Shown: positions 1-13,511 of the stretch, one piece after another
Layout of the letters: each line of letters starts with the position of its first letter
How positions within the stretch are numbered: position 1 is the stretch's first letter
Assembly: GCA_965644295.1 (NCBI GenBank)
Contig: CBFFRP010000487.1
Location: 1-13,511, forward strand
Length of the DNA: 13,511 bases
Origin: Paraphysomonas bandaiensis
Taxonomy: Eukaryota > Protista > Chrysophyceae
Direction of reading: 5' to 3'
The notes under the pieces: model-generated
Database searches by the model: none
Told to the model about the DNA's origin: nothing
Seen by the model: the letters and a program-made list of their open reading frames with translations, nothing else
Translations under genes and position numbers: made by a program

Positions 1-835
1 GCACCCAAGATCACTAGCACCAAGCTTTGGTCTAACTTAAAACAAGTGATAAACACCATAGAAGCATATATGCACACACACACACTCCTAACATGGTGCA
101 ACACACGTGGTGTCATCACACCACCACAGGTTGTGTAACTCTTCAATCAAAACTGAAAAATACACAGCAACCTGATAGGGAATGGCTCACCACCATATGC
201 CGAGAGTACACCGTATACTACGTATCTATACCCTACCAGAGACTGAAAACCCATAATCCAGGAAATACATAAATAGCTGTACATATAGTACGTATAGTAC
301 GCATACCACATTGCAATCCAACCCCAATAAGCCTTGCATGAACACTCGTGCACCTCAAGTGTATAATAGCGACTTCTCTCCTGTGATGGTCACATGTATT
401 TGCCCCCCTATAGGGTAGTACGGGTAATACATGTACATGTGTACGTATATGAGTAGTATACTGCAACTGCTACACAGGAATACGGGCCCACGTAACTTTG
501 ATATAAATTTGCAGCAGGTTTCACATCGTGACCGAAGTCACCAGCAGCAGATCATAGTCGTACATCATCAGCAGCAGATAAAAAATGTGGACATCATACC
601 TCAGAACGTTGGCCCAATATGTAGGTACACTGTGGTACAGTACCAAATGTCCAGAATGGTGTTGCATAATATGTATCCTGAACACAATGAAGGTCCTAAA
701 GCAATATATAGGGGTCCTGATATAGGGTCTTAAGCCAACATAGGGTCCTAAAAGCCAATGTAACCATGCATGTGACTCAATAGGGTGATACTATAGCCAC
801 GTAGATAGTGGCTGTGGAAATGCCACGTGGTCACA
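1..835 (-). repeat. 3' LTR of the Gypsy element (partial)
   Basis: Aligns to 7542-8367 (gcacccaagatcactagc... to ...gccacgtggtcaca). Homology stops at 835/8367, giving a TG start on the minus strand directly after the PPT. Confidence 0.95.
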
Positions 836-850
836 CTGCCTCCCTCCCCC
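836..850 (-). promoter_or_regulatory. Polypurine tract (plus-strand DNA primer)
   Basis: Minus strand reads GGGGGAGGGAGGCAG immediately before the TGTGAC LTR start. Confidence 0.92.
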
Positions 851-945
851 GTTTTGGTCGTCTACAGAATAGCATGCCTCCGGTATTCACAAATGCCAAC
901 GGGACTAGGTGTTACGTAGCCGTCAAAACGAAAATCCCCGGAGAA

Positions 946-1644
946 TTATAAGCTATGTAATAACAATTTGATATGGAATGGAATTGAGAGAGCAATAAGA
1001 ATGATGTGTCCAGCGTGGAACTTAATAAGACGGTGCCGGACCCGAGGATATTTGTTGGCAAAATCCTCGTCCACGAGTACCATTGTGCTGGCATTCACCT
1101 CGGAATGAACAAAGCAATGCACTAGGTAATTATCATAACGGTAGGTGCGGAGAGTGAGAAGATCCTTCACAGGATAAAACTCGCTTAGAGCTCTATGTGA
1201 TACCAGCGTGTAGAACTGGATAGGAGCTACATAAGTAAGCCTGAGGACAGAGTCTGGCAATTCCCAACTCATCGTACCAAGCATCACCATAAATTCGCAA
1301 ATCAACGATAAGGCTAGATCACCAGGTTGAAACCGAGTGATCGGTTGCCTGCGGAAATCCCGCGGATGTGTATTTCTTTGCATAGTCAGCAGTATAAATA
1401 AGATGGTAAAGATATCGTTTTCGAGAACAGAATCTGCAGCATAAGGAACGGAATCAAAAATATCCTTGCTGTAAGGGACTTCTCGGACATCTCCATCTTG
1501 AAAACGCACAGATGCGAAAACCATGGTAGATCGAACCTCTCTATCACCACGGTAATAAAGGATTTCATCAATAACATGTTGATCCTGATCCCGTAAAGCC
1601 ATTTTGTAAGCAGCATCAGAATCTCGCCGGAAACAATTTAACAT
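946..1644 (-). pseudogene. Frameshifted C-terminal extension of Pol integrase (chromodomain-like segment plus a second PGD-containing module)
   Basis: Overlaps the pol end and lacks a convincing start. QHVIDEILYYRGD...F..VRFQDG resembles the chromo pattern (Y/F)xVExIL..R...Y.V.W. An alternative frame near 1264-1308 gives VDLRIYGDAWYDELG, implying several indels (decay or sequencing error). Confidence 0.7.
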
Positions 1645-4600
1645 CGCTCACGGAAACACGAACCACTTGCCCAGTGGCGAGATGTTGACAGTCTACGTCA
1701 TTCTTGTACTGGGACTTGACTGAGAAAGGTCCCATATACCGGTGAGACATCTTAGGATGAACCTTTGCCCCTTTGTCAAATAAGACAAAATCTCCCGGTT
1801 GATACCTATTCTGTCTATCGGGATGCACACCTGTTCCTGCCCTCTCCGTGGCTAACTTTTGCTGATAAGCTTTGGAAGCCTCTCGGAGTTGGGCTAACTG
1901 ATCATTAAGCGCAGTGAGTCTAGCATGCGCCCGATCGGGAAGATCTTTGATATCCATGTTCAAATAGTCAAGATCCTTTGAGCCAAACGTCAACTCAAAA
2001 GGCGAAAATCCTGTTTCCGAAGACACTTCAGAATTTAGAAGATATTGAACACTTGCTAACCAACTAGGGTCCTCAAAGATGTCTTGTCGTTCCTCCCGTT
2101 CACTGTAATCATAGACCAGAGCACGTAGATGTCGAACTACTTCTCCAATAATTCTTTCACATCCATTTGCATGGCGATTGGCAATACTAAAAGTGTGCCG
2201 AACACCCATGTACTCCGTCAACTGTTTGAACAAATCTGAAGTCAAATCCGGTCCTTGATCCGAGATTATTAGATCTGTGTGACCGTAATGACTCCAGTAT
2301 TTCCATATAGTATTTGCAAGATTAAGAGCCGTCACACCTTTGACAGGTTCAAGGTACACAAACTTGGTGAAAAGATTGACCACCACGTTGATATGTGTAT
2401 ATCCCTCTGCACCGTGAGGTGTAATCTCAACAGCATCTATACCAATCGCGCTACGAGCATTTGGGGGCTTGAGATTTCGTACGATCGGGATAAGAGCCTC
2501 CTTCATAGCCAACCTCGTTTTCACACAATTTGGGCACTTAGAGATATAATCCTCAACAACCTTGTAAGGAATATTATGACCCGGGAACTCTTTGTTTAAG
2601 CGTATCCAGGTAGCCCTTCCCCCCATGTGTCCAACTCGCGCGTTATGAACCTCACGCAACGCCGTCTCCGGTGATACATGAGATGTTGGAGGGTCCCCAA
2701 TCTCTCGATCATCCGGGTTCATAAAGTTACCCAGAAAGTTAAAGTACTCATACTCATTACAGTCATCCCCCATGAAATAGGCGTCATCATATTCCTCCTC
2801 TGGGAATATTCCAGAGAGTATAGCAACCTGATGCTCTCTAGATAACCAGTCCGCCAACCAATTCTTGGCACCAGATATATGACGAATGCTGAAGTTGAAA
2901 GACTGCAAGAATATCCTCCATCGTGTAATCTTTGGAACATCCGAAGATTCCATCCACAATAAATTGTTATGGTCGGTCTCAATTGTGAATTGCTTGCCTA
3001 TTAAGTAATAAGCCAAGTGTTTAACACTGTAGAAAATTCCATATGCCTCTTGCTCTATAGTTGACCACTTCTGAGCTTGGGCAGAAAACTTTTTGGAAAT
3101 GAAAGCTATAGGCTGCCACTGTATGCTCCCATCCTCTAATATTTTCTTTTGCAATAACACTGAACCTATTCCCAACTCACTAGCGTCAGTACGCAATGTC
3201 CACTCAAGATTATAATCCGGATAAAACAGCTCACAAGCGTCTTGTAGTCCAGCAATGAAACGACGATACTCTGCCTCGTAGTCATGCCGCCATGTGGACT
3301 TATCCCAATTGAAACTCGACTTTGTCATGTCAGTCAAGTGAGCAACTAAATCAGAGTATCTAGGCGTAAAACTAGAAAAGAATACCCCTTTACCCAGCAA
3401 CGATCTGGCCTGTTTGGTGTTAGTAGGCATTGGAATCTTGCCGAGAGCCTCCTTCTTATCGGGATTAACCTCATATGACTTGTGACGGCAAACATATCCA
3501 AAGAAATCCACCTTTCTAAACCCCAACCAGCTTTTTGGCATCTTAAGTTTCACATTCCTTTCAATACATCTGTCAATGATCTTCTCGAACTTCTCATAAG
3601 CATCCCTGGCATCATTAGCCAATATAAGCATGTTATCGAAAATGACTATGGCCCACTCAGAGAAATCATCGAATATTTCTCTCACAGTTTCCTGTAAAAC
3701 ACCCGTGGCCGGAGCAATACCCTCTGGCATGAAATTAGGAGCAAATTGCCCCCAAGGCGTCTGAATTGATAGGCGCTCAGAAGTTTCATCATCTAATGGA
3801 ATTTGATGAAAAGCATTTGTTAAATCTATATCCATGTATAGCGGAAAGTTGATAATCTTGTCCAACTCATGCTTAACATTAGGAATCGTATAATTTCCCA
3901 CTTCCATGTGCTTGTTAATTTGCACATAGTCACCACAAAAACGGATGTATGGAGGAGTGGCTTTGGGAGCAACCACTAGGCATGAAGCCCAAGGAGAACG
4001 ACTCTTTCGGTAGAAATAGCCACACAGTCGCCGAAACTCCTTCTCCGAAGCCTCCCACAGCTTAGGATTGATCGGGCGAGCCTTTGGTTTCATTCGATCC
4101 GGGAGAGTGCTTTTCCATTTTAGAGACAAAGGGTCCACACCTCTCACACCGCTCCATTCGTCAGGCACGAACACTTTTTCAGCCTTCGTTGACAACAATT
4201 CCATAATCTTAGTTTCACTTTTCATTTCATCGCTGACATGAGTCTCTATCTGCTCATGATAGTCTTGGAGGGCTTCCTCCCTAGACTTTCCTAAGAATGT
4301 CAACGCATCCTTGAATTGAACCGGTAACTCAGTTTCCTCATCCTCTGGGGCAATAGCATCACTCGCTCTTGACCATGGGTGCACACGGTCATCAGAGTCA
4401 ACCGTGTCCCCTGCCAGAGATGACAACACATTCGAATTTTCATTATCGGAGACACCCTCGATTTGAGTGTCATGTGCCTCACGCATAACAGCACACATGA
4501 AAGGATATAATTTTCCAGTCAGCGCAGGCAACCCCAAAATAATATCATTACTCGTCATATCAATCACAAAGAATTCACCCGTATATTGATAGGTATGACT

Positions 4601-5026
4601 CTTCGGATCAGTCAGCACTAAATTTAATCTGACTCCTTCATTGAGATCCTTCACCGTTCTACTATCCGCCAATACCACACGGTGTTTAGCTTTATAAAAA
4701 CGGCTCGGTTCTAGTTTGTTCCGCAATCTGTCCACCAAATCCCTCGACACATAATTGGCTGAGAGGGCTCCAGTGTCACACAATATTTTTACTAACTCCT
4801 CTATTCCAAATTTTCTATCTAAAGTAATCCTTCCTATAGTGTGCGCTGAAGAGAAGCTCTTGGATGAAGGATAGCAGGCATACAGCTTAGCCTGATCCCC
4901 GATACAGACATTGGAGGAATTCGCAAACTCATTAAGGTCATTAGAATGCACTGAACATTCATCATTCTCATCACGAGTCTTTGAATTAGAATCCTCCCTG
5001 TCTGTATCGTTACATCCACCGAACCA
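1616..5026 (-). CDS. pol: Pol polyprotein: aspartic protease, reverse transcriptase, RNase H, integrase
   Basis: PR: ILCDTGA, DIILGLP. RT: SPWASCLVVAPK, RFCGDY, DIDLTNAFHQI, MPEG, IFDN, DFFGY. RH: TDAS, EQEA, TDH, ADWLSR. IN: HNARVGH...CPNC, GID, SDQG, NGCER, YMGPF. The frame is open from 5026, 25 codons upstream of the GTG at 4951. Confidence 0.97.
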   Translation of the reverse strand, partial: WFGGCNDTDREDSNSKTRDENDECSVHSNDLNEFANSSNVCIGDQAKLYACYPSSKSFSSAHTIGRITLDRKFGIEELVKILCDTGALSANYVSRDLVDRLRNKLEPSRFYKAKHRVVLADSRTVKDLNEGVRLNLVLTDPKSHTYQYTGEFFVIDMTSNDIILGLPALTGKLYPFMCAVMREAHDTQIEGVSDNENSNVLSSLAGDTVDSDDRVHPWSRASDAIAPEDEETELPVQFKDALTFLGKSREEALQDYHEQIETHVSDEMKSETKIMELLSTKAEKVFVPDEWSGVRGVDPLSLKWKSTLPDRMKPKARPINPKLWEASEKEFRRLCGYFYRKSRSPWASCLVVAPKATPPYIRFCGDYVQINKHMEVGNYTIPNVKHELDKIINFPLYMDIDLTNAFHQIPLDDETSERLSIQTPWGQFAPNFMPEGIAPATGVLQETVREIFDDFSEWAIVIFDNMLILANDARDAYEKFEKIIDRCIERNVKLKMPKSWLGFRKVDFFGYVCRHKSYEVNPDKKEALGKIPMPTNTKQARSLLGKGVFFSSFTPRYSDLVAHLTDMTKSSFNWDKSTWRHDYEAEYRRFIAGLQDACELFYPDYNLEWTLRTDASELGIGSVLLQKKILEDGSIQWQPIAFISKKFSAQAQKWSTIEQEAYGIFYSVKHLAYYLIGKQFTIETDHNNLLWMESSDVPKITRWRIFLQSFNFSIRHISGAKNWLADWLSREHQVAILSGIFPEEEYDDAYFMGDDCNEYEYFNFLGNFMNPDDREIGDPPTSHVSPETALREVHNARVGHMGGRATWIRLNKEFPGHNIPYKVVEDYISKCPNCVKTRLAMKEALIPIVRNLKPPNARSAIGIDAVEITPHGAEGYTHINVVVNLFTKFVYLEPVKGVTALNLANTIWKYWSHYGHTDLIISDQGPDLTSDLFKQLTEYMGVRHTFSIANRHANGCERIIGEVVRHLRALVYDYSEREERQDIFEDPSWLASVQYLLNSEVSSETGFSPFELTFGSKDLDYLNMDIKDLPDRAHARLTALNDQLAQLREASKAYQQKLATERAGTGVHPDRQNRYQPGDFVLFDKGAKVHPKMSHRYMGPFSVKSQYKNDVDCQHLATGQVVRVSVSDVKLFPARF

Positions 5027-6865
5027 TCAAGGGCGGGAATCACCGAAGTGATCCCTCCTCAAGATGGTCGGTTGTTTGTCCCTCTGCTCCGAACTTCCCG
5101 CAGACTTAAGATACGCATCGATCTTGTCCCGCATTTCGGACGCAGAATCCAACAGACATTTCGCATTATGATTATAAGGACAGTCTGTTTTGTCGCACTT
5201 GCCATACATGATTTTCCTAAGACACCCATACTTATCGGTCTTATTATTCTGAGCACCAGTGGGTCTGGAATGCATGGCTGACAGAGACCTATCTGAGTTA
5301 AAACGACGCTCCTCATCAACTGCTGCGTCCTTACCCGACATTGGTTTCACATCTGTCATCATAGCGACTTGTTTATCGTCATGTACCTCCAGATTGCTGG
5401 ACCGCCAAGTCTCACTCGGAGCATCCCACAAATCATCATCATTGGGTACATACCCATCATTATCATCCCACTCATCGTTATAGTTTCCTCCAGACTCATC
5501 GTAAGTATCTAGATGTGACACTTGCGAAACCCTTGGTTTAGAATCAACACGACTGTTCAACGAAGGTTTGTTGGACTGTTGAGAGAATAGTTCCTTTCTC
5601 CTCTTAAGATAGTCCTCGTGCTTCTGTTGAAACATCGTAGTCGACTCCATAGGTAACTGTCGGTACGCGATGGTTACTTGATAATGATCCAAGAGTACAG
5701 CCGAATACTCTTTGAAAAATTCGCTCATAGAGTCAAATTTATTAGTCGACATGCACCCCAACACATACTTAACATAGGTCCCGTCATTCAAAGTCTTAAA
5801 GAGTCTTATCAATCCGTACTCTTTGTCATCGATACGAGGACACCATGTTTTGTTTGAGACCAACATGATAGACAACATTGTTTGGAACGATTGCATCAAG
5901 TTCAATTGCTGATGATAGAATGCCTCAAAAGTCACAGCATTTACATACTTCCAGTCCATGATCTGGATATGTTTCAAGGAATCTCTGAGTTCATTATAAA
6001 ATGCCACGCAATTGAACACCTTGGTCTCCTGAGCCACAATGAGAAGCAAATCCGAAACATCCATTTGTGCCAGCTGCGCATGTGTGATGCTGTACACATT
6101 CCGCAGATGTGCCTTCAAACTGGTTGAAAGTACCTTTTGAATTCGCACCTCAGTTTCTTCTTGCTCTTGAAACTCTAAGATGTCTTTGATCGCTTTCGCC
6201 ACTTTACCCAACTTAAAGTCATTGATGCGAACATGACACCTCCTTTCCTCTCTAGTTATGGTAACTGTTTTGGCACTAGCCACCTCAGAACTTTTCTTCA
6301 AATCCCTGAATAACTTGCCCGCTTTCTTGCCCTTAAAGATGTTATCCATGAGGGTAAGCACATCATTAACACCATCACCATCAACATCGGGATTCGAACC
6401 ATCGTCCTCCTTGTTGCTATCTTCCTCCTGAGGAATAATGCGAAACTTAGCCATGTTTTCCAGAGTGGAATACCTCGGCTGACGTTTGTGTTTCGACGTG
6501 CGCTTGGTAACCTTTTGCCGCTGATGTGAGCCCACAGAAGCCTGAGACTGACTGCTCTCACCATCCTCAACATTTTGTACTCTATTCTCCAATATTTGCA
6601 TCCTGCTGCTGAGGTTAGACACTGCAGTAGCCACCTCTGTAAAAGACTGAGACATGGCACGAACTGTATCCAAAATCTCCTGGTTTGGATTGATGTTTGG
6701 AGCAGAAGACTCCTGAACAACATCCTGCACACCTCCAGCAGCGTCTTGTTTGGTTTCACCACTACCACCAGCGGCTTCCTGATCTTTCCCAGGAGTTTTC
6801 TTGCCGCCTCTCCTCGTTTTACCAGTCGGAGTTGACATGGTTAATGAGAAGAGCTTCCGCCTCAA
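5027..6865 (-). CDS. gag: Gag-like protein (about 600 aa) with C-terminal CCCH finger; likely start at ATG 6838 (MSTPTG)
   Basis: Long ORF directly upstream of and in frame with pol. It has a disordered or coiled-coil N-terminus, a helical-looking core and a Cys/His motif near the C-terminus. Assigned by position, not by recognised homology. Confidence 0.85.
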   Translation of the reverse strand: MRRKLFSLTMSTPTGKTRRGGKKTPGKDQEAAGGSGETKQDAAGGVQDVVQESSAPNINPNQEILDTVRAMSQSFTEVATAVSNLSSRMQILENRVQNVEDGESSQSQASVGSHQRQKVTKRTSKHKRQPRYSTLENMAKFRIIPQEEDSNKEDDGSNPDVDGDGVNDVLTLMDNIFKGKKAGKLFRDLKKSSEVASAKTVTITREERRCHVRINDFKLGKVAKAIKDILEFQEQEETEVRIQKVLSTSLKAHLRNVYSITHAQLAQMDVSDLLLIVAQETKVFNCVAFYNELRDSLKHIQIMDWKYVNAVTFEAFYHQQLNLMQSFQTMLSIMLVSNKTWCPRIDDKEYGLIRLFKTLNDGTYVKYVLGCMSTNKFDSMSEFFKEYSAVLLDHYQVTIAYRQLPMESTTMFQQKHEDYLKRRKELFSQQSNKPSLNSRVDSKPRVSQVSHLDTYDESGGNYNDEWDDNDGYVPNDDDLWDAPSETWRSSNLEVHDDKQVAMMTDVKPMSGKDAAVDEERRFNSDRSLSAMHSRPTGAQNNKTDKYGCLRKIMYGKCDKTDCPYNHNAKCLLDSASEMRDKIDAYLKSAGSSEQRDKQPTILRRDHFGDSRP

Positions 6866-6999
6866 AGACTATATCCACCAAACTTTTCCCTAACACACTG
6901 AGACAAGCAACCCTGGCAACTCCTAGAACCACTGACCCAGAACTCAACAACACACCACAAGACAAATCCCAAAGACAACCCTGCGTAAGAATCCAAAAA

Positions 7000-7025
7000 C
7001 TCAACACTCAACACTCAACACTCAA
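7000..7025. repeat. 7-bp tandem repeat (CTCAACA, about 3.7 copies) in the Gypsy 5' leader
   Basis: ctcaacactcaacactcaacactcaa read directly. Confidence 0.9.
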
Positions 7026-7116
7026 AACCCGTTGAACCCGTCGGATTTGTACAAGTGACAACAGTTAACACACAGGCGGTATCCACGGTCGATTGACTTC
7101 GAAAAGAACCGAATTT

Positions 7117-7128
7117 CCCCAGTCACCA
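7117..7128 (-). promoter_or_regulatory. Candidate primer-binding site of the Gypsy element
   Basis: Minus strand ...ACACA gtg TGGTGACTGGGG. TGG lies 3 nt after a CACA that mirrors the TGTG LTR start, and TGGTGAC resembles tRNA-Trp-type PBSs. It cannot be confirmed because the matching end of the other LTR is outside the window. Confidence 0.45.
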
Positions 7129-7131
7129 CAC

Positions 7132-8367
7132 TGTGTATCAAACAATCACCACTGAACAAAGAGCCTAGAGAACAACTACTGACAACTCACACCCAGAGAA
7201 CAACAGACAACCAACAACCACAAGCAACCGAAGGCAACAGACAACAAGCCCAAAGAATCAAGCCCAAAGAAGCGTGTCGCAGTTAGTTTCTTATAAGAGT
7301 GTGAAACAACAGCGCAAAGACAGAAATTTCTGTACGAGCAGTAAAGTAAATATTTACTATAACAACACCCGGTTTGATAACCAGGGTGTTGGCTCGTAAA
7401 CAATAAAACTACAACAACACCTACACTGAACCAACAAGCACAGTAATAACGGTATTATTATTAAAACACTTTTTTCCAAGTTTAGACCTAAACTCAGTTA
7501 GTGACTCCCGCGAAGAGTCACCGCGCAATGGTATACCGCTGGCACCCAAGATCACTAGCACCAAGCTTTGGTCTAACTTAAAACAAGTGATAAACACCAT
7601 AGAAGCATATATGCACACACACACACTCCTAACATGGTGCAACACACGTGGTGTCATCACACCACCACAGGTTGTGTAACTCTTCAATCAAAACTGAAAA
7701 ATACACAGCAACCTGATAGGGAATGGCTCACCACCATATGCCGAGAGTACACCGTATACTACGTATCTATACCCTACCAGAGACTGAAAACCCCATAATC
7801 CAGGAAATACATAAATACGGTACATATAGTACGTATAGTACGCATACCACATTGCAATCCAACCCCAATAAGCCTTGCATGAACACTCGTGCACCTCAAG
7901 TGTATAATAGCGACTTCTCTCCTGAGATGGTCACATGTATTTGCCCCCCTATAGGGTAGTACGGGTAATACATACATGTATGTATGTATATGGAAGTATA
8001 TACTGCAACTGCTACACAGGAATACGGGCCCACATAACTTTGATATAAATTTGCAGCAGGTTTCACATCGACCGAAGTCACCAGCAGCAGATCATAGTCG
8101 TACATCATCAGCAGCAGATAAAAATTGGACATCATACCCGAACGTTGGCTCAATATGTAGGTACACTGTGGTACATTACCAATGTCCAAATGGTGTTGCA
8201 TAATATGTATCCTGAACACAATGAAGGTCCTAAAGCAATATATAGGGTCCTGATATAGGGTCTTAAACCAACATAGGGTCCTAAAAGTCAATGTAACCAT
8301 GCATGTGACTCAATAGCGTGATACTATAGCCACGTAGATAGGGCATGGGAAATGCCACGTGGTCACA
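7132..8367 (-). repeat. 5' LTR of the Gypsy element (right boundary firm, left boundary tentative)
   Basis: 7542-8367 matches 1-835. Extension to 7132 is inferred only from the TGTG...CACA inverted termini and the candidate PBS. Confidence 0.8.
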
Positions 8368-10112: not shown

Positions 10113-10155
10113 TTCTCGCGATCTATAACCTTTGTTTGCCCTTTTACTCATCAGC

Positions 10156-11270
10156 ATGGCTCTCCCTGTCTCCAAAAATCCTATCCAGGAGTTAACACTG
10201 GATCAATGCAAACGATTATCTTCTCACCTCGATAATCTGTCTCTTATATTTCCCTCTTGGGATGTTCCGCAGTATCCGGCACGTCTGCAAGACTTTGAAG
10301 CTTTCGAAACAGACTTTCGTGCGATGCTGAAGTCTACAAAATTATAATTAGACATCATCACCGGAAAGTCTATACGCGGCGACACACCTCCAATTGATGC
10401 TGATGATGATGTCAAATTACTGGCGGAATGGCGTCAATCACTGTATGATGAAAAAAATATATATGATCGTATACTCCGCATTATGGCGCGCGTTCCAGAC
10501 CAATCCCTCCAGTCGTGCGCACATTGGATTGAAGTAGCGATATAATGATTACGGTCTACAGGCATGGAAGAACCTATTGGCTTACATTGACCGGACGAAA
10601 TCGTCGGAGGACCGGGCTACGGAACGACAGGCCTTCTATTTGGCAACACAGGGTTCCAATATGAACAAGTTGCCTCCATCATTGCTAAACGCTTAAAACG
10701 GCGCAGCGACACAATATTCCCGATGCCGATCTCAATCAGCAATTATTATTTACTGGCTTCAGGGACCCATCCAAGGAACAGTCTCTTCGTTCACTTTTGC
10801 GCGCCACTATGCGTGGTTTGTCCTTTGAGAAAATTCTTATTCGGATAGAAGAACAGCTGCCTCTCTATGAAACAAGCGCGTTACCCTCTTCCAAACAAAA
10901 ATCAGTGTGTCCGCATTGTCACAAAAAATGCACACATTCTCCAGAAAATTGTTACAAAAATCCCAATTTTTCAGCTTTCAAGAAAAAACGAGATTTGGAA
11001 GACATTCACTGTTTGCGTTGTTGTGGTCAATTTGGCCATTATTATGTTGTCATGAACTGCCCGAAGAGGCCTAAACCCCCCGCACCTCCTGCACAACAAC
11101 CAGAAGTGCCCCAAAACGCTCCACAGCATGCTGCTAACCCTAGGCCCTCAATTTTGGTCAACAGAAGCGGTCGAGGACGTGGACGCCCACCCAAATCAAG
11201 TCGTGGCAGAGGCCGTTCTGGCACACACCGTCGTGCATCTACCAGACATGTACAGTTCATGGATACTGAT
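10156..11270 (+). pseudogene. gag: Copia gag remnant with two CCHC-like zinc knuckles
   Basis: Starts MALPVSKNP and carries stops and frameshifts. Contains CPHCHKKCTHSPENC and CLRC(C)GQFGHY(YV)VMNC, followed by a Pro-rich and RGRGR-rich tail. Confidence 0.8.
11259..11270 (+). repeat. Left copy of 12-bp target-site duplication ATGGATACTGAT
   Basis: Identical to 12482-12493. Confidence 0.92.
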
Positions 11271-11357
11271 CCCTCAACAAAGTCGGACTCGCACCTTTTC
11301 GTGGTGTTCTGGGGGATAAGTACCGGAGATATTTCTCCGGGAAACTAACGTGAGCCG
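11271..11357 (+). ncRNA. Putative (probably decayed) HDV-like self-cleaving ribozyme
   Basis: P2 CGG(A)CTCGC/GTGAGCCG; P3 ACC/GGT; L3 TTTTCGT; P1.1 GG; P4 CCGGAGA-TATT-TCTCCGG; J4/2 CTAAC; imperfect P1 CCCTCAAC/GTTCTGGG. Confidence 0.6.
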
Positions 11358-11476
11358 CATATTATATAGTCAGCAGATATATTGTTCTGCCCACTCATAG
11401 CCAAATGCTTGTGTGGTACAAGGGACACTAATAAGTGTCACTTGTGTAGACGTCTTTGGGCCCTGACGAATAAACA

Positions 11477-11553
11477 GGCATCTGGGAATGGGCCCACCTC
11501 AAGGGCATCCGGGACAGGGCCCACCAGAAGGGTAACCGGGGTATTGGGCTGCC
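11477..11553 (+). repeat. 27-bp imperfect tandem repeat (two good copies and one degenerate copy) inside the insertion
   Basis: ggcatctgggaatgggcccacctcaag / ggcatccgggacagggcccaccagaag / ggtaaccggggtattgggctgcc. Confidence 0.8.
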
Positions 11554-12481
11554 TGCTGAAGTTAAGCATCCGGGATGTTCACCTTAAGAACTCAAAACAC
11601 CTGAAGTCAGCAGATGTCAGGTATATCAACATTCTGCTTGCTCCCTGCGTTTGCTTTGAGTGATTGATGCTGAGTATGAGTTCACATTATTCGGTATCTG
11701 TGTGGCCAATGACCGAGGTAATGCGTCAAACTTTCCTCATGGATGCATGGCAATGGCAATGATGTGATTAGACCTGTCATGTCTTCTCACACGTCTACTG
11801 CCTAGTCTTGGTTTCTCCTGACCCAGGTCATTGAGATTATATCAAGGCTCTGGCACTGTTCTCCAAGCAGTGTCAGGTACATTTGTGGTGCTTTTATGTT
11901 ATTCTTGCTTAGTAGGTTTTCATCCGAGCGGGGAAGGTGCACGGTTTCCTACTAGTGTAAGTCACTCGGGAGAAGAGTGCAAGGTGGATGCATGTGCTGG
12001 ATGAGTGCACACAATGGAGGGAAGACATTGGAGTCAGCTTGAATTTGTAACAGATTTTGGTAGATGTCTGTTTCATGCGTCAGTGTGCAAAATTGCACCA
12101 GTGAGACCGCTTCGTGACCGTGGGAGGACCCGGCGCTATAGAGCTACTTTATTCTCCCTTCCAGACTACCTGCTGCTGTGAACACCACCTTGAAGAGGGC
12201 CCTAAAGATCTGCCGCATATACAGGAGACATATGCCGAAGACACCGACCGCAAGTTGTTTGTGTTAGGACAAGTAGATTGGGCAGGAGCGTATGATCCGG
12301 CTTAAACACGCAACTCGTCGTATGCCCATGTAGCTAACTAAATCGTGTTGTATAGTTGAGCACTTGTCGGTGCATGCAATAGTAACTAGATGAGAGTCAT
12401 GTTATGCATAGTGTCGCGCGAGTTGTTAGGTTGGTCGCGGCAACGCACAAGCTTGCGCTTCTTAATAATCAGATTTTCAAT

Positions 12482-12493
12482 ATGGATACTGAT
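12482..12493 (+). repeat. Right copy of 12-bp target-site duplication ATGGATACTGAT
   Basis: Identical to 11259-11270. Confidence 0.92.
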
Positions 12494-13511
12494 GATTCCC
12501 CTTATTCACAGACACATAGTAGTGATTCCAATGATGTCTTGATGGTCCTTCCATCTTCTGCAGTGGCCCCAAAGAATTCATCAGCCTCAACTAAGTGCTT
12601 TATTCTTGATGGCGGATGTGTTTTGACCATTTGGTTAATGATTGTACGCATTTATCATGTTTTGTACCAACGTCACGTCATTTTATTAAGGTTGCCGATA
12701 ACCATCAGCTCAAAGCGTGTCTGGAAAAGGCGATATTTCATTCTTCAAGAGAGTTAAATATTATCCACAGATCTCCCAGAATTTATTATCCGAAGGACTT
12801 ATGTTTGATCAGGGGTGGCATTTCAGGCAGATGAATAATGGAGACAAGATCGCCTCCATCATACACAATATTATGGCGCACGTCATCAAATTCACTTTGA
12901 TTATGATATTATGCGGTATTGGACTGCAGATCTACCTATTACAGGTCCTGCTATATATGTGAACCTGTTGCACGTTTTCCCAACGACATTTGTCACGTCA
13001 GTAATCCCTCTGTTACATCCATATCACCCAAGAAGGACACTACAGTTAGCTCATCCAATATGATGCTTTGTTCATACCGACGTCATCTTTCGACCCGTAT
13101 TTACTTCCTTCACCCACGTTGGATACCACCTTCAGCACCACAGTTTCAGCCGTTTTGCATGATGATTTGAATGCAACTCTACGTACATCTACACCCGGCT
13201 GTTGTGGTTTTTATGTGTCCTATTGTACTACCCCATGTACTTCTGCTAGTATACGTCTTCTGCTGACGGCACCGCTCACACCCCTCCGTCCAAACGTCAG
13301 TGTGTTCGCCGCGATCGCAGTAGATATATAGTAACGTCAAGATGCCTCCTAACTGCAGTTCATTGGCACCTGTCATCTCGAAGGCTGCACACGCGTTCCT
13401 GTTACTCCATCTCCAATTAGGTCATTCGGCGTACTCCATTCTCTATGATGCCCTCCGACATGGTAAGATTACTCTGGATTTCCATACTCATGGCGCTCTA
13501 TTGACATCAAC
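12482..13511 (+). pseudogene. pol: Copia pol remnant: protease, Pro/Ser/Thr-rich spacer, start of the GAG-pre-integrase domain
   Basis: FILDGGC (12599-12619), then across frameshifts FDHLVND...FIKVADNHQLKA and SGKGDISFFKRVKYYPQISQNLLSEG. LLHLQLGH at 13402-13425. Confidence 0.85.

Follow-up and report, generated by a model that had tools for sequence, protein, structure and literature searches.

The window analysed here, which is the whole 13,511-nucleotide stretch of Paraphysomonas bandaiensis contig CBFFRP010000487.1, raises the question of whether a mobile element inserted in it begins with a self-cleaving RNA. An initial annotation had placed an HDV-like ribozyme fold at positions 11271–11357, starting exactly at the 5' edge of an insertion flanked by target-site duplications. 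Reading the sequence together with that of its relatives, we consider it likely that this segment is the 5'-terminal HDV-like self-cleaving ribozyme of a family of non-autonomous, non-coding retroelements, similar to the short internally deleted elements (SIDEs) of R2.

The insertion and its family

The insertion (11271–12481, plus strand) is 1211 bp long, non-coding, and lies between perfect 12-bp direct repeats inside an otherwise continuous gag-like ORF. The repeat, ATGGATACTGAT, has exactly two matches in the window, the left copy at 11259–11270 and the right copy at 12482–12493 (both on the plus strand), and two matches were obtained in 0 of 200 shuffles; the duplication measures 11 bp if the last A of the element is counted with the element, and 12 bp otherwise. 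The interrupted ORF (10797–11270, plus strand), which is decayed and carries Cys/His knuckles, restarts in frame at 12482, so that the host reading frame is in phase across the empty site (...HVQFMDTD followed by DSPYSQ...), and the insertion has the same orientation as the ORF. The insertion and the target-site duplication that had been proposed are real; a complete duplication, checked at both ends, was seen in the window copy alone. The host as a whole (10140–11270 and 12482–13511, plus strand), a decayed ORF of retroelement-like character, has Cys/His knuckles, is broken by many stop codons and gave no Pfam match; we infer it to be of the gag or copia-like kind. Elsewhere in the window, a Ty3/gypsy LTR retrotransposon occupies positions 1–8367 on the minus strand, with LTRs at 1–835 (cut by the window start) and 7542–8367 that are 93–100% identical in their aligned blocks, and with a 1111-codon Pol (RT, RNase H and integrase) and a 612-codon gag-like ORF. 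This element looks recently active, because a 100%-identical Pol is found within a cluster of 32 Tara contig proteins; there are, in addition, hundreds of environmental homologues of the gypsy Pol.

The insertion has no LTRs and no inverted-repeat pair linking its two termini, and a Pfam search with every one of its ORFs gave no match. A tRNA-type SINE was ruled out, as ARAGORN finds no tRNA-derived head in the element, and so were a Helitron or a DNA transposon, by the perfect 11–12 bp duplication and the absence of terminal inverted repeats. Inside the element, a 27-nt tandem duplication (GGCATCYGGGA..GGGCCCACC..AAG; 11477–11530, plus strand; units 81% identical) is present as a single unit, or deleted, in diverged short copies. 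The 3' module (12445–12481, plus strand) consists of a palindromic hairpin around AAGCTT (12445–12458), about 25 nt upstream of the 3' end of the element, followed by the conserved 3' terminus of the family, ...AATAATCAGATTTTCAAT. The AAGCTT hairpin is a candidate recognition structure for the reverse transcriptase of a partner element; short variants have another hairpin-forming segment (GCTTGCGGCGACGCACAAGC), located further upstream.

Near-identical sequences were found in Tara Oceans marine metagenome contigs only, which hold eight further copies or fragments of the element. These copies were collected via protein, with an ORF of the insertion leading to three contigs (L001–L003) and an exhaustive HMMER search to three others (L007–L009); word-index, exhaustive HMMER and profile protein searches returned these six contigs in total, in which all copies are non-coding, and no autonomous partner with an RT was found by these protein-based searches. 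Two of the copies (L001 and L003) represent, like the window copy, a long form of ∼1.2 kb and are 98–99% identical to it, while short forms of ∼0.5 kb have the 3' terminus and the initial ∼320 nt in common with the long form and are 71–94% identical to the window copy. Five complete 5' ends, one of them from a short variant, follow five unrelated upstream flanks, and their homology begins exactly at C11271 (alignment A1), the first base of P1, which agrees with the earlier observation that the fold starts precisely at the 5' edge of the insertion. A sixth 5' end, in L008 (∼72% identical), has the same first base and has lost ∼33 nt from P3 to P1'. At the other end, six copies share ...TGCT(A)AATAATMAGnnnTTCAMTA and then diverge. 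The fixed 5' end, the conserved 3' end with its hairpin, the internal-deletion variants, the 11–12 bp duplication and the lack of coding capacity fit a non-autonomous retroelement copied by target-primed reverse transcription, which is the class to which we would assign the element.

The family is dispersed: the window copy lies in the gag-like ORF, another copy adjoins a hAT-like remnant, and others are found within or close to further members of the family. The remnant, just upstream of the copy in L003 (112–333, minus strand), matches the hAT C-terminal dimerisation domain weakly (E = 0.0017, short of the Pfam cut-off). Of the three contigs that have 60 nt or more of flank 5' of a direct copy, two carry a second copy, inverted and head-to-head: in L001 (1–68) it abuts the 5' end of the direct copy and is itself 5'-truncated at element position ∼38, and in L002 (1–194) it lies 110 nt away and has a full 5' end. 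Such pairs could reflect nested insertion, a preference of the element for its own copies, or a Penelope-like arrangement. In L002, a segment internal to the short variant (its positions 335–389) is also found upstream of the full 5' end (245–303), with GTGC between the two, and may represent a chimera formed by template jumping at the 5' terminus of the RNA. A tandem-like arrangement occurs in L007, where the 5'-truncated 3' part of another copy (496–560) follows the 3' end after 16 AT-rich bases. Lastly, a Cys-rich ORF of ∼129 codons runs from the first base of the element in L001 (69–457), L003 (334–722) and L002 (304–716); it is closed in the window copy by a 1-nt indel in the P4 loop, has no Pfam match and is probably not coding.

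The candidate ribozyme and its closest known counterparts

Direct reading of 11260–11360 yields the strand order P1-J1/2-P2-P3-L3-P3'-P1'-(P1.1)-P4-J4/2-P2', which is that of a nested double pseudoknot, and our own descriptor search returns exactly the same helix assignment; all elements are found in the order and at the positions that the initial annotation had given them. On the plus strand, the 5' strand of P1, CCCTCAAC (11271–11278), begins with C11271, which would be the 5' end of the proposed cleavage product and is the first base common to all copies. It is followed by a 5-nt J1/2, AAAGU (DNA AAAGT; 11279–11283), by the 5' strand of P2, CGG(A)CUCGC (11284–11292), and by P3, L3 and P3' (ACC, the 7-nt UUUUCGU and GGU; 11293–11305). 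The 3' strand of P1, GTTCTGGG (RNA GUUCUGGG; 11306–11313), comes directly after P3' and can form 6 of 8 pairs with 11271–11278. Then come GG (11314–11315), a candidate for P1.1 through two G·U pairs with U11297 and U11298, and, after a J1/4 of 7 nt, the P4 hairpin CCGGAGA-TATT-TCTCCGG (11323–11340), with 7 perfect bp and a 4-nt loop. J4/2, GAAACUAAC (11341–11349), holds the candidate catalytic C at 11345, within CUAAC (11345–11349), and the conserved block ends with the 3' strand of P2, GTGAGCCG (RNA GUGAGCCG; 11350–11357). P2 comprises 8 pairs, including one G·U, with A11287 bulged.

Several of the features by which HDV-like ribozymes are recognised are present: a 3-bp P3, a 7-nt L3 with the conserved U...C-G, and in J4/2 a candidate C followed by N-A-A before P2'. 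P1 departs from the ∼6–7 contiguous pairs expected of such ribozymes, since two of its eight positions, adjacent and central (U11274×U11310 and C11275×C11309), are mismatched in all full-length copies. P1.1 is limited to G·U pairs (U11297 and U11298 with G11315 and G11314, respectively) and is invariant in the four distinct sequences that cover both of its sides, and J1/4 is longer than the 0–2 nt reported for R2. The two P1 mismatches, the C as first base and the G·U-only P1.1 had been raised as caveats from the outset, and all of them hold. Decay of this particular copy, in contrast, is not supported: its mismatched P1 positions, its initial C and its L3 UU recur in all full-length copies, including those that are 98–100% identical, and the UU is found even in L009, which is only ∼75% identical. 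Being common to all full-length copies, they are traits of the source sequence of the family rather than of this one copy.

The stretch 11293–11308 is identical at 14 of 16 positions to the published catalytic-core motif of the Drosophila R2 ribozyme, ACCTCCTCGTGGTRTY, which we took from published primer sequences. Both differences are C>T changes in L3 (UU in the candidate, CC in R2), just as the initial annotation had noted. Allowing two mismatches, the motif has a single match in the window, where 0.02 would be expected, and a match in 4 of 200 shuffles; this one match lies 22 nt from the 5' terminus of the element, on the sense strand.

The overall layout, compared qualitatively and by eye, parallels that of drz-Agam-1-3, an 86-nt member of the HDV-like ribozymes of Anopheles gambiae whose sequence is printed in bioRxiv 10.64898/2026.10.01.755752 and whose helices were assigned by our own parse, to the point that the two appear near-superimposable. 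In both, J1/2 has 5 nt (AAAAU in drz-Agam-1-3, AAAGU in the candidate), P2 consists of 3 bp, a bulged A and 5 bp, GG follows P1', and P4 is a hairpin with a 4-nt loop; P3, L3 and P3' read ACC-UCCUCGU-GGU in drz-Agam-1-3 and ACC-UUUUCGU-GGU in the candidate, and the nucleotides before P2' are C-C-A-A-C and C-U-A-A-C, respectively. The two differ in P1, which in drz-Agam-1-3 is a perfect 7-bp helix starting with G and in the candidate has 8 positions, 6 of them paired, and starts with C, as well as in the CC or UU of L3 and in J1/4, of 3 nt in drz-Agam-1-3 and 7 nt in the candidate.

Within the family, the J4/2 sequence AAACTAAC is invariant in 9 of 9 copies and fragments, element positions 31–90 are 87–100% conserved in copies that are 75–78% identical overall, and a hypervariable linker (37–67% identical) starts right after P2'. 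This conservation is consistent with function and does not prove it, because other blocks of the element are equally conserved. Over the 87 nt, the two long subfamilies differ by three changes alone, all in P4, which lengthen its stem from 7 to 8 bp, shorten its loop from 4 to 3 nt and so keep the hairpin. Both changes observed in P3 maintain pairing as G·U, and one-sided changes in P2, P3 and P4 likewise retain G·U pairs. Compensatory changes number 0 in 28 pairs, a count that is uninformative rather than negative, since the copies are too few and too alike (3–4 distinct sequences span the two strands of P1 and of P2) and the diverged contigs are without the 5' strands.

Chance, competing structures and other explanations

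How easily could such a fold be found by chance? A relaxed descriptor, which admits two P1 mismatches and a G·U P1.1 and is thus loose enough to accept the candidate, fits ∼180 start positions in 27 kb (both strands) when it is left unanchored and P2 is required to have at least 5 bp. With P1 fixed at the first base of the element, as was done for 20,000 dinucleotide shuffles of its first 120 nt, any match to the relaxed descriptor was obtained in 44 of the 20,000, a match with at least 7 bp in P2 and at least 5 in P4 in 7, and one at the level of the candidate (P2 of at least 8 bp and P4 of at least 7 bp) in 1. Because the unanchored descriptor is loose, the weight of the argument lies in the coincidence of the fold with an independently defined 5' end and in the match to the R2 core.

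Rfam, which the initial annotation had named as a check, gave no HDV-like match: cmscan of the whole window at gathering score reached no family and gave no hammerhead, and at E ≤ 10 on segments of 701 nt and 110 nt it returned noise alone, with no HDV-like or other ribozyme. This is a weak negative, as pseudoknots are left out of the models and the number of families, 4227, enters the E-value as a factor. A scan of IMG/VR gave no matches. A scan of JGI metagenomes with a 19-mer from J4/2-P2' gave three matches, set aside as chance matches in an unrelated, apparently protein-coding stretch. A scan of GTDB genomes with a gapped core pattern gave 10 loci, of which the two inspected (L010 and L011) are chance matches; several of the matches fall in a repeated sequence of one Chloroflexia MAG, four copies of which carry the pattern (L011, L013 and L018 are among the loci), and the one inspected copy (L011) seems to match by chance and to be unrelated to the element.

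The minimum free energy (MFE) structure is a nested two-hairpin alternative (CCCUCA/UGGGGG and GGACUCGC/GUGG.GUUC) at −26.2 kcal/mol, with a folding z-score of −0.83, and it is in competition with P1 as well as with P2. For the nested portion of the HDV-like fold (P2, P3 and P4), the score is −23.7 kcal/mol, which makes the fold energetically competitive even before P1 is added. We also considered the contiguous 6-bp helix CCCUCA/UGGGGG as the P1 of an HDV-like register and set it aside, as it forces either a 4-nt J3/1 or a 19-nt L3; it is non-canonical as well, because 4 nt separate P3' from P1' and the guanines of P1.1 are consumed. Two changes speak against the 8-position P1, namely C11278>G in L002b, which breaks its top pair, and a TT inserted in the P1 3' strand of L009, and both affect positions that are unpaired in the contiguous alternative.

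The segment could be the structured two-hairpin terminus of another kind of mobile element, with the HDV-like reading a product of pattern-matching by eye; the ease with which the relaxed descriptor is satisfied elsewhere, the plain two-hairpin MFE and its z-score of −0.83, the absence of Rfam matches and the absence of covariation would all agree with this. We nevertheless hold it to be highly improbable, as it would leave to accident a fold anchored at an independently defined 5' end that is equalled in a single one of 20,000 shuffles, a 16-nt core so rarely expected per window and yet so near that end and on the sense strand, and the detailed features in common with drz-Agam-1-3 (the bulged A of P2, the length of J1/2 and C-N-A-A-C). 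A somewhat better case, although still an unlikely one, can be made for a relic, that is, a sequence of HDV-like descent whose catalysis was severely impaired by the two adjacent P1 mismatches and by the replacement of CC with UU in L3, and whose 5' end is set by other means, such as an internal promoter starting at 11271. In this family of ribozymes, P1 mismatches are uncommon and single ones have been linked to the loss of activity in vitro, and both P1 mismatches and lost conserved L3 bases correlate with inactivity of R2 ribozymes (PMC3774820); the competing nested MFE fold is the more stable one, no Rfam model matches, and the first 77 nt of L1Tc are described as promoter and ribozyme at once (PMC3383444). 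Against such a loss of function speak the persistence of the supposedly defective sequence in near-identical, young copies and of the L3 UU in the 75%-identical L009, a block more conserved than the flanking linker with an invariant J4/2, and the retention of the conserved C-G of L3, the candidate catalytic C and the A's of J4/2. A scan for promoters and terminators of the bacterial type is uninformative for a eukaryotic sequence.

A further alternative concerns the class of the element and leaves the ribozyme aside: its carrier might derive from another retroelement class, e.g., a Penelope-like one, instead of being a LINE-dependent, SIDE-like element. Insertions of Penelope-like elements are typically arranged as partial tandems, with inverted 5'-truncated copies ahead of them, and the inverted head-to-head copies in two of the three contigs with at least 60 nt of upstream flank, the internal segment just upstream of the 5' end in L002 and the 5'-truncated 3' part 16 nt after the 3' end in L007 recall this pattern. 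The window copy, in contrast, consists of a simple insertion between clean duplicates and is free of partial tandems, and known Penelope-like elements and retrozymes carry hammerhead and not HDV-like ribozymes, while Rfam finds no hammerhead in the window; we thus think a derivation of this kind quite improbable. The preferred reading of 11271–11357 remains that of an HDV-like ribozyme at the 5' end of a SIDE-like element.

As the odd features of this ribozyme are family-wide, it either works in its present form, or the uniform 5' end arises otherwise, e.g., from a start site like that of L1Tc with its dual Pr77/L1TcRz. Taken to its full extent, the former would mean that the element is a recently active, dispersed SIDE-like parasite whose HDV-like ribozyme works in vivo with a P1.1 of G·U pairs alone and with two neighbouring pyrimidine mismatches in P1, as a natural variant beyond the sequence rules accepted for the fold. 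This stronger proposal is a tentative one that we would not expect to hold in full, and a variant ribozyme of this kind may require high Mg2+, folding during transcription or the help of a protein chaperone supplied by the partner.

A possible mode of propagation and its significance

The boundaries and the duplication of the insertion, the family with its uniform 5' ends, the compatibility of the sequence with the fold and the resemblance of its core to known ribozymes are shown by the data above. From these observations we infer how the element may propagate, including its cleavage, its read-through transcription, its mode of transposition and its reliance on a partner. With no evident promoter of its own, it would be transcribed within a read-through transcript, here in sense orientation inside an old retroelement ORF. 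The ribozyme would fold co-transcriptionally and cut immediately 5' of C11271, which would remove the host sequence and leave the RNA with a definite 5' terminus. The reverse transcriptase of an autonomous partner would then act on the conserved 3' hairpin and terminus in target-primed reverse transcription, a step that would produce the 11–12 bp target-site duplication.

Comparable strategies are known from several retroelements. Cleavage at the 5' end has been documented for R4, Dong, Baggins, L1Tc, RTE and the R2 of Drosophila (PMC3774820), and R2 SIDEs are non-coding internal-deletion derivatives in which the 3' end and the ribozyme at the 5' end are preserved (PMC3414825). The present family resembles R2 and its SIDEs in having, at its very 5' end, a candidate HDV-like ribozyme that is predicted to cut at the first base of the element, in the core ACC-UxxUCGU-GGU-RUY, and in non-coding forms that arose by internal deletion, retain both ends and have no poly(A) tail. 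It differs from them in its dispersal, since R2 and its SIDEs are site-specific in 28S rDNA, and from R2 in the UU that replaces the CC of L3 and in the two central P1 mismatches. In the L1Tc/NARTc elements of trypanosomatids (Pr77-L1TcRz), RTE, R4/Dong and Baggins, a 5'-terminal HDV-like ribozyme is common to an autonomous element and the non-autonomous one derived from it, and it releases the RNA from co-transcripts; the 77 nt of L1Tc also act as an internal promoter, a role that the present element is not known to have. Retrozymes and Penelope-like elements are likewise non-autonomous retroelements with self-cleaving ribozymes, to whose arrangement the inverted and partial-tandem copies in L001 and L002 are similar; theirs, by contrast, are hammerhead ribozymes, often with circular RNA.

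Non-LTR retrotransposons and deletion derivatives of them that carry an HDV-like ribozyme at the 5' end are already well documented in insects, trypanosomatids and other animals. Since the same strategy is known for R2 and its SIDEs, R4/Dong, Baggins, RTE and L1Tc/NARTc, the candidate described here probably adds a further example of it, from a marine eukaryote. What is of interest is the occurrence of a non-canonical P1 and P1.1 in an apparently recently active family. If the RNA is active, the sequence space tolerated by the HDV fold would be widened to include a G·U-only P1.1 and a mismatched P1, and the element would represent a ribozyme-dependent parasite that reaches dispersed sites through the read-through transcripts of other mobile elements. 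The module would also provide a sequence handle by which the autonomous partner may be located in the source genome.
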